Sequence record: NC_027402.1
Reading direction: 5' to 3' (one strand)
DNA: 64,000 nucleotides
The position numbers were made by a program, and so were the translations under genes. The first letter of the stretch is position 1, and each line of letters opens with the position of its first letter. Of the stretch, positions 1,771 to 5,448 are shown in pieces. The notes beneath the pieces are model-generated. The model did no database searches. It was not told the DNA's origin and saw nothing but the letters and a program-made list of their open reading frames with translations.

Positions 1771-1846
1771 GGGGGTATGGCGCAATTGGTAGCGCACCGG
1801 TCTCCAAAACCGAAGGTTCGAGGTTCGAAACCTCGTGCCCCCGCCA
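1771..1846 (+). tRNA. trnW: tRNA-Trp (CCA)
   Basis: Acceptor GGGGGTA/TGCCCCC, D stem GCGC/GCGC, anticodon loop CTCCAAA, T arm CGAGG-TTCGAAA-CCTCG, encoded 3' CCA; 76 nt. Confidence 0.95.
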
Positions 1847-2339: not shown

Positions 2340-2928
2340 TTCGATACGAGACACGTTTATGCATGAAATACTCCAGTACATCAGGATGTTGATTTCAAAC
2401 GTCCGGTTCTGGGTATTCAGTCATGTTTGGTTTACAGGCGATGGGTTTTCCCGTAAGGGCCCCACTTACAGACTGGCGTCTCCACGACAACCGTCCCTAG
2501 GGGACAGGCAAGCACCGGCCCATTAAGCCGCCATGCTACGCCTGTAAATCCACAATCTGATAACCGAATGGGATTGAGTTCCCAGTGTTAGGGTGACTGT
2601 GTGTCACCGTAGGCGCGGTACCTCATACGGCCGGTACGCCACGAATGTACGTGATAGCAGGTGGTGCTTGGAGACGCTAAGACCTGACCTTACGGCCAGG
2701 CTCAGAAGAAGAAGTCCATCACCTGTATTCAGAAATGAATTTAGGTTAATTATTGGAAGTGGCGAAATCACTTACGTGATAACTTAGTAGTATGCAACGA
2801 ACAATACCAGAGTGACTTTACGAGGTTACTGTGGTATATGTCGGTGCGCCGGGCAACGTGTTGCCGCAGATAAGCCCGAGGGAGCTGACTGCACTAACAC
2901 ACGCCGGGATGCACCGGCACCTTACAAC
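2340..2928 (+). ncRNA. Candidate large structured ncRNA
   Basis: No credible CDS; perfect 10-bp long-range stem 2431-2440/2539-2548 enclosing sub-hairpins; further hairpins; directly upstream of tRNA-like genes. Strand is inferred from neighbours. Confidence 0.4.
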
Positions 2929-2998
2929 GGCTTTGTAGCTCAGGTAGGTAGAGCAGCCTCTTTGAGGAAGGTCGCCGGTTCGAGACCGGTCAAAGCAA
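2929..2998 (+). tRNA. tRNA-like gene with truncated anticodon arm (3-nt TTT loop)
   Basis: GGCTTTG/CAAAGCA acceptor, TA-GCTC..GAGC D arm, AGGTC variable loop, GCCGG-TTCGAGA-CCGGT T arm; anticodon arm GCCTC-TTT-GAGGA is 4 nt short; no encoded CCA. Confidence 0.7.
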
Positions 2999-2999
2999 G

Positions 3000-3073
3000 A
3001 GCAGCGAAGTTAGAGGAATTAACACCCGACTCATAATCGGATATTTCGACGGTTCGAATCCGTCCGTTTGCTC
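3000..3073 (+). tRNA. Degenerate tRNA with CAT anticodon (Met or Ile2)
   Basis: D stem GTTA/TAAC, anticodon CCGA-CTCATAA-TCGG, T arm GACGG-TTCGAAT-CCGTC; bulged acceptor stem, A at position 8, no CCA directly after the discriminator. Confidence 0.7.
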
Positions 3074-3456
3074 GCCCCATTTGTGTTATCCTTATCCCGA
3101 AGGCATTCGAAATAAGACGCGTATCCACACACGGGTCAAGGGTAACACGAACCACTTCCGCGGTCACCGTGTCCATTGCCGCCTACCTGCATGGGCTGTC
3201 CTCCGACACGGTGACTTCGGGCCAACTTACAGGCCAGGGCCGTTTGGGTTTTTCTTACGCATCCATCCAGAGCCACCTCGCGCCCTAGTCTGTATACCCC
3301 TTTTCTGTTCCTGGTTTGCCAACTAAATCAATTAAGCCTGGTGCGTTGCCCTGGGAACAGAAAAACTTATTCGGTTACACACCGAACCCACCCACGAGGG
3401 ATATGTCGTGGACTACCAATAGAAGCAGCAATAGTAGAAGTAAGAAGGAAAGCAAC

Positions 3457-4278
3457 ATGTTTACAGTTAAACGTGTGATTGATGGTGACCGCATTATTAC
3501 CGAACATGAAAAAGTTCGTATCGGTGACCGTAAGTCTCGTGTATTCCGCGAGGCGTTAAAGATGCTCGAGAACGAGCGATTCGACATTGTTGTCGATGAT
3601 GATTTTTTAGCAGTTAATCCAGGATTAAAACGCGTCGCCGCCGACGTACCTGATCCGATTACAAAGCACCCGTCCGATTATTACAGTTGGGTGACTCGAA
3701 TGCAAGAAGATCAAAAATCGGGTCATCTGTATCTGAAACAGCTTTTCCCTAATCTTGTTATTCCCGACTTGGACGACATTGAGCTGTTTAACTGCAATGT
3801 GCGTGACTTTATCAGCTATGTGCTGGATGATAAAGGTACTGCTGTTCTGATACTGGACACGGGTTCACGTATACCCGATGCTGTGGATAACATTTGTGGT
3901 GAAATCGTTGGTTACGGTACACCCCCAGAGAAATTAGGTTGGTATAAACCGTCGCCTGACAGCGATATGAAGATTATTATCTACACCCAGGAAGAGCTGC
4001 AGCAAGTTGAATTGGAATCGGGACCAGTAATGGAGTTCACCGATGTCCAGGAGCAGTCTCAATGGGTTAATGGTGAATGCGTTGTTACTGTTTTAAAAGG
4101 CGCTCGCCCTGGCGACCGGTCAGTCGATGAACTGATTGGCGCAATGTGCATCGAAGAAGAATCTGGATACGATCCTGATAACCAGATCAGTACCGGTGCG
4201 TTGTACGAACTGTTTTATAAAGGCGACGAAGTCTACGTGGTTAACTCTCACGGTAAGACTACCGACGCCCTTCGCTGA
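3457..4278 (+). CDS. Hypothetical protein (gp4)
   Basis: Long ORF; AAGGA SD supports the ATG at 3457 (MFTVKRVIDGD) rather than 3316. Confidence 0.8.
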   Translation: MFTVKRVIDGDRIITEHEKVRIGDRKSRVFREALKMLENERFDIVVDDDFLAVNPGLKRVAADVPDPITKHPSDYYSWVTRMQEDQKSGHLYLKQLFPNLVIPDLDDIELFNCNVRDFISYVLDDKGTAVLILDTGSRIPDAVDNICGEIVGYGTPPEKLGWYKPSPDSDMKIIIYTQEELQQVELESGPVMEFTDVQEQSQWVNGECVVTVLKGARPGDRSVDELIGAMCIEEESGYDPDNQISTGALYELFYKGDEVYVVNSHGKTTDALR

Positions 4279-4368
4279 ATTAGCTAACGCCCAGTAGCTA
4301 TGTTCCTGACGATTAGCCCTCGTCTGACCTTGTAAGACCTTGTAGATTTACATGCCAACACCAGGGAA

Positions 4369-4409
4369 GTCCTCACTCTTCGGAGTGAGGACAACTCTTT
4401 TATTTTTTT
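4369..4409 (+). terminator. Rho-independent terminator
   Basis: GTCCTCACTC-TTCG-GAGTGAGGAC followed by a T-rich run. Confidence 0.85.
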
Positions 4410-4426
4410 GTATTCCAAATATTTGC

Positions 4427-4440
4427 AGATAGATATTACC
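4427..4440 (+). promoter_or_regulatory. Putative early (virion RNAP) promoter
   Basis: AGATAGATATTACC; motif recurs upstream of early genes and resembles the phiKZ early TATTAC element. Confidence 0.65.
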
Positions 4441-4500
4441 TAAGTGAGATGAGAAAGCCTCATCTGAATTCCCCCAACTCGACTATAAAAGGTAAGCATC

Positions 4501-5448
4501 ATGTACAGACCAAGTAATCCTAGCGCTATTGAAGGATTAAACCAGGATGGCTTCAGCCTCGCAGAAGCAACCCGCATTCGACCTTTCTTACCTCGCAGAT
4601 TCTTCCCTTTCGGTTCGTTATACAGAACGAACTTCGACGCTTGGGAAGCGATACGTGCTGTAAAAGATGCACTACAGTACAAGAACTTCGAATTCCGATT
4701 TGTGTTCAAATGGGGCAACGGCGAATTGCTCCACTACTTCGGATTCCAACAGAACGAGTTTATTGAGTATACCTCACCTACGTACCACACCAGGTTCTTA
4801 AGTATCGAATTCGTTCGCCATTTCGGCGATGCACTCTTTACGGAACGGGCTACAGATGAAAACCACGGACGTAGGCTGATGTTAACGAACGGTGCATTGC
4901 GCATCAAGATGAATCGTTTACGGGAAGCGTATAACCAACTTATCAATCCTGAACCGGTAATGTTTCCAACAGTCGCAGATTTGAACGTTACACCACTCCA
5001 GCTACCTGTGGATATAGACAAACCGATCCTGGCAATCAGAGCACTGCAGGCAGGTTACGCAAACTGGTATAAAGGGCACAGTCTCCCGAACACCAGATTG
5101 AACATCGAACCGTATGAGTTGTGCCTGTTCTTAACGTTACGCAAACAGCTCGAGCCAGAAAACTTAGACTTACGTTATTTAGCGACTCCTGATGTTGGAA
5201 CCTATTATCCTGCGAATTGGATGGTTGCGGCAGTCCTACCGGACGGCGAGATGGTCGGTAGCATCGTTTATGGGACTCAACAATTACCTTCTCCGTTAGC
5301 ACCACCGAAGGATTCTATATATCCGTACGCTTCCTGGTACGTTGGCAGTAACGGAGCTAGATGGTTGGTACTCCACGTCCCTGAGGAAGTTTATAATTTG
5401 TTTCCACGTGAGCAATGGCTTAGCGTGTACGATTTTCAGTTTGGTTAG
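4501..5448 (+). CDS. Hypothetical protein (gp5)
   Basis: 315-aa ORF between a promoter motif and a terminator; no recognisable motif. Confidence 0.8.
   Translation: MYRPSNPSAIEGLNQDGFSLAEATRIRPFLPRRFFPFGSLYRTNFDAWEAIRAVKDALQYKNFEFRFVFKWGNGELLHYFGFQQNEFIEYTSPTYHTRFLSIEFVRHFGDALFTERATDENHGRRLMLTNGALRIKMNRLREAYNQLINPEPVMFPTVADLNVTPLQLPVDIDKPILAIRALQAGYANWYKGHSLPNTRLNIEPYELCLFLTLRKQLEPENLDLRYLATPDVGTYYPANWMVAAVLPDGEMVGSIVYGTQQLPSPLAPPKDSIYPYASWYVGSNGARWLVLHVPEEVYNLFPREQWLSVYDFQFG

Follow-up and report, generated by a model that had tools for sequence, protein, structure and literature searches.

The window analysed here, 64,000 nucleotides in length, is the left end of the genome of the Salmonella jumbo phage SPN3US (JN641803 / NC_027402), and its numbering is that of the phage record. 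Only three tRNA-type genes are present in SPN3US and the phages nearest to it. One is a tRNA-Trp, and the other two are tRNA-like genes that adjoin each other and are referred to here, in SPN3US window numbering, as element 1 (2929-2998) and element 2 (2999-3074). The features are collected in Table 1. GenBank annotation near element 1 includes a 'tRNA-OTHER' at 2933-3002. A minus-strand frame across the same region, SPN3US_0003 (2940-3176), was considered as a protein and rejected, because it matches no PHROG and its reading frame is interrupted in MET_P1, phage 1252, and Lh1B.

Table 1. Features of the tRNA-type genes at the left end of SPN3US (window positions).
Feature	Position	Strand	Description
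tRNA-Trp(CCA)	1771-1846	+	ARAGORN call; Rfam 65.6 bits; only ordinary tRNA left in SPN3US; CCA encoded
Element 1, tRNA-like RNA without a functional anticodon loop	2929-2998	+	70 nt; Rfam tRNA 37.1 bits; ARAGORN silent; 19 covarying homologues
Element 1, acceptor 5' strand	2929-2935	+	GGCUUUG (DNA GGCTTTG); G1 unpaired, facing A72
Element 1, D arm	2938-2954	+	Stem GCUC (2938-2941) / GAGC (2951-2954); 9-nt loop with GG
Element 1, mini-hairpin replacing the 17-nt anticodon arm	2956-2968	+	G-CCTC-TTT-GAGG-A; G.A, CCUC/GAGG, UUU loop; 13 nt
Element 1, variable loop	2969-2973	+	AGGTC (RNA AGGUC); 5 nt
Element 1, T arm	2974-2990	+	GCCGG-UUCGAGA-CCGGU; stem 2974-2978/2986-2990; canonical T loop
Element 1, acceptor 3' strand and discriminator	2991-2998	+	CAAAGCA (2991-2997) and A73 (2998); CCA not encoded
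Element 2, tRNA-like gene with CAU anticodon loop	2999-3074	+	Rfam tRNA 30.6 bits; ARAGORN-negative; 8-pair acceptor stem, bulged U

Architecture and setting of the two tRNA-like genes

The Rfam tRNA model spans element 1 from end to end (37.1 bits against a gathering score of 29, E 3.4e-5), and four anticodon-loop positions are deleted in the alignment. The element was missed in the filtered whole-genome Rfam search despite its score in the site search. ARAGORN makes no call at element 1 in SPN3US. An earlier note, made from the sequence alone, had described the acceptor, D, variable, and T parts as normal, and both the sequence and the Rfam tRNA match bear this out. The acceptor stem consists of six pairs plus the G1.A72 mismatch, the T loop is of the UUCRANY type, the D loop contains GG, and the Rfam threshold is passed. 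In place of the canonical 5-bp stem and 7-nt loop with U33 and a purine at 37, element 1 has 4 bp and 3 nt. The earlier note was right about a 13-nt anticodon arm with UUU, but the mini-stem it counted as five pairs consists of four Watson-Crick pairs and a G.A mismatch. Its G1-A72 mismatch and missing CCA are both present as described: the base directly after A73 of element 1, G2999, is the first base of element 2. Lacking a usable anticodon loop, element 1 cannot read codons.

In SPN3US, the cloverleaf with the triloop lies 1.1 kcal/mol above the minimum free energy (MFE) fold, while in relatives whose mini-loop reads UUC or AUC the cloverleaf is itself the MFE fold. The long hairpin that forms the alternative MFE fold of the SPN3US element was rejected because it is absent from the UUC and AUC variants. 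Element 2 also encodes no CCA and is the constant partner adjoining element 1. Its anticodon arm is identical in most lineages, with differences of 1-2 letters in Asesino, Caitlin, and Machina, and its acceptor and T stems covary across lineages.

Relatives of SPN3US carry many more tRNAs at the same locus. Between 6 and 13 ordinary tRNAs are found there in SPAsTU (Seoulvirus), in the Machinavirus phages pSal-SNUABM-04, pEa_SNUABM_6/9/10/43, Machina, ChrisDB, and Caitlin, and in the Erskinevirus phages Asesino and phiEaH2. The block of ordinary tRNAs in SPAsTU sits at the point matching window position 2922/2923, just upstream of element 1. On this comparison, SPN3US has lost the ordinary tRNAs of its relatives at this locus and has kept elements 1 and 2. 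The two elements also stand apart from the ordinary tRNAs in other respects. Of 86 distinct tRNAs called by ARAGORN in the fetched loci, 75 encode CCA; the 11 calls without it are element 1 (4 calls), element 2 (6 calls), and one incomplete Asn call. Rfam scores range from 47 to 76 bits for the ordinary cluster tRNAs of relatives, from 31 to 42 bits for those members of the element 1 family that were not missed altogether, and from 30 to 46 bits for element 2. In pairwise comparisons with the cluster tRNAs, the ordinary tRNA closest to element 1 is tRNA-Ile(GAU), which shares the D arm and variable loop and whose acceptor end reads U1:A72, G2:C71, C3:G70, and A73. No likeness to tRNA-Lys was found in these comparisons.

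RNA evidence for the locus comes from Logan assembled contigs of public runs, which carry no end, strand, level, or processing information. Run X1 has contigs spanning 2478-4585 and 627-2507. The ends of the X1 contigs carry template-switch-oligo sequence, indicating that X1 is a cDNA library. In two RNA-seq runs of a close relative (X13 and X14), contigs cover 2924-3602; this relative carries a 263-nt insert upstream of element 1. The region of element 1 thus lies under RNA-library contigs, in libraries where carry-over of DNA is possible. A scan for sigma-70 promoters and terminators yielded nothing useful. The leader motif AACAATG, which precedes elements in the clusters of relatives, has 11 matches in the window against 11.9 expected; since it is not enriched, it is not a general promoter motif. 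A search of the phage genome found no gene for a CCA-adding enzyme, RtcB, an RNA ligase, or Ro (TROVE), and no phage synthetase or transferase was found.

Conservation and covariation across three genera

Homologues of element 1 were sought by using the anticodon arm of element 2 as an anchor and reading the sequence upstream of it. The anchored search yielded 3 viral and 4 metagenome loci, and an IMG/VR scan for element 1 that allowed an arm of variable length gave no match. In all, 19 distinct versions were assembled from GenBank phages (Seoulvirus, Machinavirus, and Erskinevirus), one IMG/VR genome, and metagenome contigs, with sizes of 65-108 nt. The short arm occurs in every SPN3US-type relative read (11 genomes or metagenome contigs with six distinct 70-nt versions), and SEGD1, an additional record, is 100% identical by BLAST across the stretch. 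Because all SPN3US-type relatives read have the short arm in common, a sequencing artefact is excluded.

The short loop is kept in all SPN3US-type genomes read, but distant lineages carry other arms. The loops of the anticodon-arm region range in size from 3 nt to about 11 nt across lineages, with a 51-nt rod as the alternative. The SPN3US type has a 4-bp stem with a 3-nt loop, and the version from the IMG/VR genome has a 4-nt loop. In SPAsTU, a 51-nt rod with a GAAA cap is mounted on the same stem base, and the cloverleaf is the MFE fold (z -4.1). In pSal-SNUABM-04, the arm consists of 6 bp and a 5-nt loop, which ARAGORN forces into a 'Pro-CGG' call with C33 and C37. In pEa6, Machina, and Ga0308156, the element is 92 nt long, has a long extra arm, and closes its 11-nt loop with a stem of 3 bp; ARAGORN calls this form '???' with a 2-nt anticodon, and the copy in Machina is annotated as tRNA-Ile(AAT). 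The form in phiEaH2, ChrisDB, pEa9, Caitlin, and pEa29 is 65-67 nt long and folds as a pair of short hairpins (z about -3 to -3.7), and the arm of this Erwinia-phage type is a 5-bp stem with a 6-8-nt loop. Even within SPN3US-type phages, the mini-loop reads UUU, UUC, or AUC, and either G or A stands at 2956. The variation of the loop letters among close relatives means that the UUU of SPN3US carries no conserved information. A standard loop (7 nt, U33, and a purine at 37) occurs in none of the 19 versions. The earlier note had named an intact tRNA at this place in relatives as grounds against its reading, and none of the 19 versions is intact. On this sample, the non-decoding state of element 1 is ancestral.

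The rest of the molecule behaves very differently from the anticodon-arm region. The ends of element 1 align without gaps across the 19 versions. Acceptor pairs 2-7 are paired in all 19, each with compensatory changes (C:G/U:A, U:A/C:G, G:C/U:A/A:U). The T stem is also 100% paired in the 19 sequences, and three of its five pairs covary. Taking the acceptor and T stems together, changes on both sides are seen in 9 of 12 pairs over the 19 rows. The covariation score is 0.655, compared to 0.26 +/- 0.025 in shuffles, and none of 500 shuffles reached 0.655. When the 3' partners were slid by one to three columns as a control, pairing fell to 24-53%. Position 1:72 is G.A and position 73 is A in every version. 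G2:C71 is found in 18 of the 19, with A:U in the remaining one, and C3:G70 in 15, position 3:70 being either C:G or U:A. All members of the family retain GG in their D-loop equivalent, so that a tRNA elbow is able to form. Element 1 is never met apart from element 2. The spacer between them is zero bases in 19/19, the base after element 1 always being G1 of element 2.

How deep is this conservation? The protein encoded directly downstream, gp4, is 82-87% identical to that of SPN3US in most SPN3US-type phages, 95-99% in JN03 and SaP7, 61% in SPAsTU, and 25-28% in Machinavirus. In the 1.6-kb non-coding stretch, the parts of SPN3US that can be aligned with pSal-SNUABM-04 are 2509-2721, 2918-3077 (elements 1 and 2), and 3076-3108, the last of which (33 nt) matches out of synteny. 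Among the 11 SPN3US-type genomes, the variable columns of element 1 are 2944 in the D loop, 2956 at the G.A site, 2961 and 2963 in the mini-loop, and 2985 in the T loop, and none of them is paired. The proportion of variable columns in these genomes is 7% in element 1 and 7% in the downstream non-coding spacer, compared to 36% in the first 330 nt of gp4; element 2 has no substitutions.

Taken together, these findings make it very probable that element 1 is a selected, non-decoding structural RNA. Two observations stand against this reading: among close relatives, element 1 is no more conserved than the downstream spacer, and Asesino manages without it. In this Erwinia phage, element 2 is present behind an ordinary leader and element 1 is absent, so some members of the group can do without element 1. 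The data rule out random decay confined to a single isolate. The selected part is the top half of a tRNA, that is, the acceptor-T coaxial helix, the elbow, and the open 1-72 pair with A73. The anticodon-arm region is free to shrink, grow, or be replaced. The earlier note had proposed in general terms that the RNA is a tRNA mimic with no part in translation, and this proposal gains support from an element that is non-decoding and kept by selection across three genera.

Possible action of element 1 and alternative readings

How might a tRNA-like RNA that cannot decode be of use to a phage? The top half of a tRNA is read by RNase P, the CCA-adding enzyme, EF-Tu, several acceptor-end enzymes, and toxins that target tRNA 3' ends. 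An open 1-72 pair disfavors EF-Tu. Phage T4 is known to have tRNA dimers with neither a spacer nor an encoded CCA. The best overall reading, which we hold tentatively and with a little less than even confidence, is that element 1 is a selected non-decoding tRNA-like RNA acting via its acceptor, T, and elbow half. Element 1 would be transcribed together with its neighbors as one precursor. Host RNase P would then cut at 2928/2929, the 5' end of element 1, and at 2998/2999, the 5' end of element 2. The second cut would also make the 3' end of element 1 at A73, which the host CCA-adding enzyme may then extend, none being encoded by the phage. The freed RNA of ~70 nt would act in trans via the acceptor-T minihelix and the elbow, as a mimic or competitor directed at a protein that recognizes tRNA by its shape and acceptor end but not by its anticodon. 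Having no anticodon, it would be kept off the decoding site.

Such trans-acting mimicry, as opposed to a role in cis, is a possibility that falls somewhat short of probable. A search of the neighbors gp1, gp2, and gp4-gp7 for a partner protein found no known domains, and in particular none related to tRNA. Furthermore, a cis role accounts no less well for the constant association with element 2, and A72-A73 could be invariant because they serve as the leader of element 2 rather than as an acceptor-end signal of element 1.

A role in cis, in processing (already one of the options in the earlier note) or in the architecture of the transcript, is the main rival to trans mimicry, although we consider it rather unlikely. 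The tRNA-like fold would serve only for recognition by RNase P, ensuring a clean cut at the junction between elements 1 and 2. In a variant of this idea, the element would give the leader of gp4 a defined or protected 5' end. In either case, the freed RNA would be functionless. RNase P recognizes the acceptor-T helix and the elbow, and the conserved acceptor, T arm, and elbow GG of element 1 are precisely these determinants, the remainder being free to vary. The fusion of element 1 to element 2 without a spacer in 19/19 versions, never alone, also fits a cis element, as does the missing CCA, a difference from the ordinary tRNAs of the cluster. The G1.A72 mismatch would leave A72 and A73 unpaired as a leader for the cut before G2999, and the RNA-library contigs continue from element 1 through element 2 into gp4. 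However, element 2 is itself an RNase P-type substrate and is present in Asesino without element 1. Its position there behind an ordinary leader indicates that element 1 is not needed for the processing of element 2. A structure of 65-108 nt with an invariant mismatch across genera also seems costly as a mere spacer.

Another alternative, speculative and very unlikely, is that element 1, after CCA addition, could be a chargeable non-ribosomal tRNA or a mimic of an initiator-type acceptor, in which case an enzyme that recognizes nothing but the acceptor end would bind or even aminoacylate it. The acceptor end of the bacterial initiator tRNA is C1xA72, G2:C71, C3:G70, and A73. Met-tRNA formyltransferase relies on a 1-72 mismatch as its mark, and such a mismatch is unfavorable for EF-Tu and peptidyl-tRNA hydrolase. 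The invariant G1.A72 and A73 of element 1, with G2:C71 and C3:G70 in most versions (18/19 and 15/19), would resemble this pattern, and the partner element has a CAU anticodon. However, MetRS needs the CAU anticodon, which is absent from element 1. Element 1 also lacks the G3:U70 of alanine tRNAs and the G-1 of histidine tRNAs, and most versions are without the long variable arm associated with serine. The lack of an encoded CCA and the failure to find a synthetase, transferase, or CCA enzyme in the phage also speak against a chargeable tRNA.

Could element 1 instead be a neutral relic, a dead tRNA gene that decays slowly and has no function? The tRNA cluster of SPN3US is being lost, the Rfam score of element 1 is low, and its substitution rate among close relatives equals that of the neighboring spacer. 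A relic would nevertheless not be expected to keep its stems 100% paired in 19 versions while gp4 has fallen to ~26% identity and the flanks can no longer be aligned. The variation among close relatives is confined to unpaired positions, the element was retained where functional tRNAs were lost, and no lineage holds an intact version. A neutral relic is therefore unlikely, and we regard it as highly improbable. The more specific proposal of the earlier note, a decaying tRNA-Lys, is rejected by the 0/19 intact relatives and by the compensatory changes in fully paired stems.

The lead idea of the earlier note was that element 1, with its UUU triplet, could act as a decoy for nucleases that cleave tRNA-Lys(UUU) in its anticodon, or inhibit them; PrrC, RloC, and PARIS are examples. 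T5 and T4 counter tRNA-cutting defences by their own tRNAs or repair enzymes, which provides a phage precedent, and the SPN3US mini-loop does read UUU. However, this reading is extremely improbable and, like that of a tRNA-Lys relic, was rejected, because the UUU is not conserved (UUC and AUC in close relatives, unrelated arms in distant ones) and the closest ordinary tRNA is Ile(GAU) and not Lys; a closed 3-nt loop also cannot present the 7-nt anticodon loop that such nucleases recognize, and no RNA repair enzymes were found in the phage.

Relation to known RNAs and significance

Compared to an ordinary elongator tRNA (RF00005), element 1 shares the 7-position acceptor, the GG of the D arm, AGGUC, the T arm, and A73. 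It differs in having no 7-nt anticodon loop, in G1.A72, in the missing CCA, and in its Rfam score (37 bits versus 47-76). A permissive Rfam search of SPN3US and the loci of nine relatives found no non-tRNA family at or near element 1; the hits to plastid UTR models were chance matches or tRNA look-alikes.

The nearest functional analogy is found in phage T4. RNA C and RNA D, small stable RNAs from the tRNA region of T4, are matured along with tRNAs. They have been described as "RNAs of yet unknown functions" (PMC9697503). Like element 1, they are non-decoding small RNAs inside a phage tRNA cluster locus. However, they are longer than element 1, and T4 is unrelated to SPN3US.

The tRNA-like domain of tmRNA resembles element 1 in that the acceptor, T, and elbow parts are kept, the anticodon arm is replaced, and there is no anticodon. 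In contrast to element 1, tmRNA has G3:U70, a tag frame, and pseudoknots. Element 1 was considered as a tmRNA and rejected, as it lacks G3:U70, ARAGORN finds no tmRNA, and the 13-nt insert is too short for a tag. Another class of tRNA-shaped non-decoding ncRNA is YrlA, or bacterial Y RNA. YrlA-type tRNA mimics are known from Salmonella. A Ro protein with a tRNA-like partner is mentioned in the literature (PMC7824862). YrlA ends in a Ro-binding stem, whereas element 1 ends in an acceptor stem. A YrlA reading of element 1 was rejected because there is no RF02553 match at the site and no TROVE/Ro gene in the phage. One YrlA hit of 29 bits elsewhere in a relative is at chance level.

Irregular tRNAs, such as the allo-tRNAs (8/4 or 9/3) and the tRNA-Other of Bacillus cereus, have a non-standard architecture and occur in phages as well (PMC5389517). 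They are sometimes found as polycistrons of several, and some are unused in translation (PMC5389517). Allo-tRNAs keep the anticodon loop and are altered in the acceptor/T branch, whereas element 1 has a standard 7/5 branch and has lost the anticodon arm. With eight pairs in its acceptor stem, element 2 resembles this class more closely than element 1 does. The T5 anti-defence tRNAs share with element 1 their membership of a phage tRNA cluster. T5 uses tRNA-Lys against PARIS and tRNA-Tyr against a retron. However, these are functional, decoding tRNAs with altered anticodon loops, whereas element 1 has no anticodon loop.

No published description of element 1 was found in the literature searched. 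It belongs with the non-decoding tRNA-like RNAs of phage tRNA clusters and offers a clean evolutionary signal. One practical consequence concerns annotation: calls of 'tRNA-OTHER', 'tRNA-Asp', 'tRNA-Pro(CGG)', or 'tRNA-Ile(AAT)' at this locus in SPN3US-like genomes should all be read as the same non-decoding element.

A bolder reading, doubtful as it stands, is that SPN3US-like nucleus-forming jumbo phages possess a two-RNA module, composed of element 1 as a mimic and the irregular CAU element 2, in which element 1 would be a trans effector and represent a new RNA class. Its target may be a protein of the host or the phage that recognizes the acceptor end and elbow of tRNA, for instance a defence toxin that attacks tRNA ends, an enzyme of tRNA maturation, or a factor involved in initiation or formylation. 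The DNA of SPN3US-like phages is shielded in a phage nucleus, and conflicts with the host at the level of RNA or translation should for this reason matter especially. The usual view is that phage tRNA clusters consist of decoding tRNAs that serve codon supply or anti-defence. In the cluster studied here, the most persistent member, together with its partner element 2, is one that is unable to decode. If the trans role is true, element 1 would offer a simple example, open to experimental test, of bare tRNA shape being used by a virus as an effector.

The CAU tRNA-like gene and its variation

The tRNA-like RNA gene that lacks a usable anticodon loop is adjoined by an irregular tRNA-like gene with a CAU anticodon. 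The acceptor stem of this second gene consists of eight pairs and a bulged U, and its discriminator is G. CCA is not encoded; the corresponding letters are CCC in SPN3US and CUC, CCU or CGA in relatives. ARAGORN made no call on the gene in SPN3US. The anticodon arm, ACACCCGACUCAUAAUCGGAUA, has the same letters in most of the lineages examined, the exceptions being Asesino, Caitlin and Machina, which differ by one or two letters (in Machina the loop is altered to CCCAUAC). In contrast to this near-constant arm, the acceptor and T stems covary. A long extra arm is present in ChrisDB, pEa6 and pEa9, and the gene carries no substitutions among 11 Seoulvirus genomes.

Features at the tRNA-like locus and in relatives (L-numbers are fetched loci with coordinates local to each)
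Feature	Sequence	Coordinates	Strand	Remark
Conserved non-coding segment	window	2509-2721		nucleotide identity with relatives
CAU tRNA-like gene	window	2999-3074	+
SPN3US_0003, annotated 78-aa ORF	window	2940-3176	-	antisense over both tRNA-like genes
Non-coding stretch before gp4	window	3075-3456
gp4	window	3457-4278	+
~263-nt insert	L002 (Proteus phage 7)	1930-2193		also L003, L008, L017, L020, L024-L026
Shorter form of insert	L006	2373-2500
Shorter form of insert	L013	around 2323-2413
121-nt tRNA-like gene	L007 (Asesino)	2360-2480
121-nt tRNA-like gene	L010 (phiEaH2)	around 2290-2410
Element closed by GGCCGUG/CACGGUC	L031 (pEa_SNUABM_9)	2186-2270
~170-180-aa ORF	L008 (phage 1252)	2023-2562
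~170-180-aa ORF	L009 (pEa_SNUABM_6)	1907-2425
~170-180-aa ORF	L013 (pEa_SNUABM_29)	1318-1854

Additional elements and reading frames in the clusters

Many relatives carry an insert of ~263 nt whose point of insertion corresponds exactly to window 2922/2923; L006 and L013 have a shorter form. The insert starts with a ~90-nt element that is closed by a 7-pair stem (GGGAGCG...CGUUCCC) and contains internal hairpins, one of them with a GGAA tetraloop. No Rfam family matches the insert element.

Another type of tRNA-like gene without an anticodon occurs in Asesino and phiEaH2. Its D and T arms are normal, as is its acceptor stem with A1:U72, and the place of the anticodon arm is occupied by an insert of ~65 nt; in Asesino the gene is annotated as tRNA-Ile(aat). 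In pEa_SNUABM_9, the CAU tRNA-like gene and tRNA-Asn have another tRNA-like element between them. This element appears to hold two T-arm-like hairpins, GGUUCGAUUCC and GGUUCGAGUCC.

Do the clusters also encode proteins? The antisense frame SPN3US_0003 has no PHROG match and is disrupted in MET_P1, phage 1252 and Lh1B; on both grounds it was rejected and is probably not a real gene. The ~170-180-aa ORFs lie at insertion points within the tRNA cluster that differ among the three phages carrying them, and may be mobile, homing-endonuclease-like genes.

Flanking non-coding DNA and possible RNA 5' ends

The conserved non-coding segment upstream of the tRNA-like genes has counterparts in Machinavirus, in Erskinevirus and in one IMG/VR genome. 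Their nucleotide identity to it is 76-79%, and they too sit upstream of tRNA clusters. Template-switch-oligo sequence ends contigs of the public sequencing run X1 at 2478 (+), 2507 (-), 627 (+), 267 (+), 5270 (+) and 119 (-), which identifies X1 as a cDNA library. As judged from assembled contigs alone, these six sites suggest RNA 5' ends. The site at 2478 falls within the conserved non-coding region upstream of the anticodon-loop-deficient gene.

On the downstream side, the only families to which gp4 shows a match have no known function. The gene contains a hypervariable block (3580-3900) where as many as 40 columns in a 50-nt stretch vary among close relatives, and relatives' RNA contigs over 3602-3781 and 3602-3901 are classed as 'same length, diverged'. 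Among SPN3US-type phages, only 7% of columns vary in the non-coding stretch preceding gp4, compared to 36% at the gp4 start. This stretch may be a structured leader or a further non-coding RNA.
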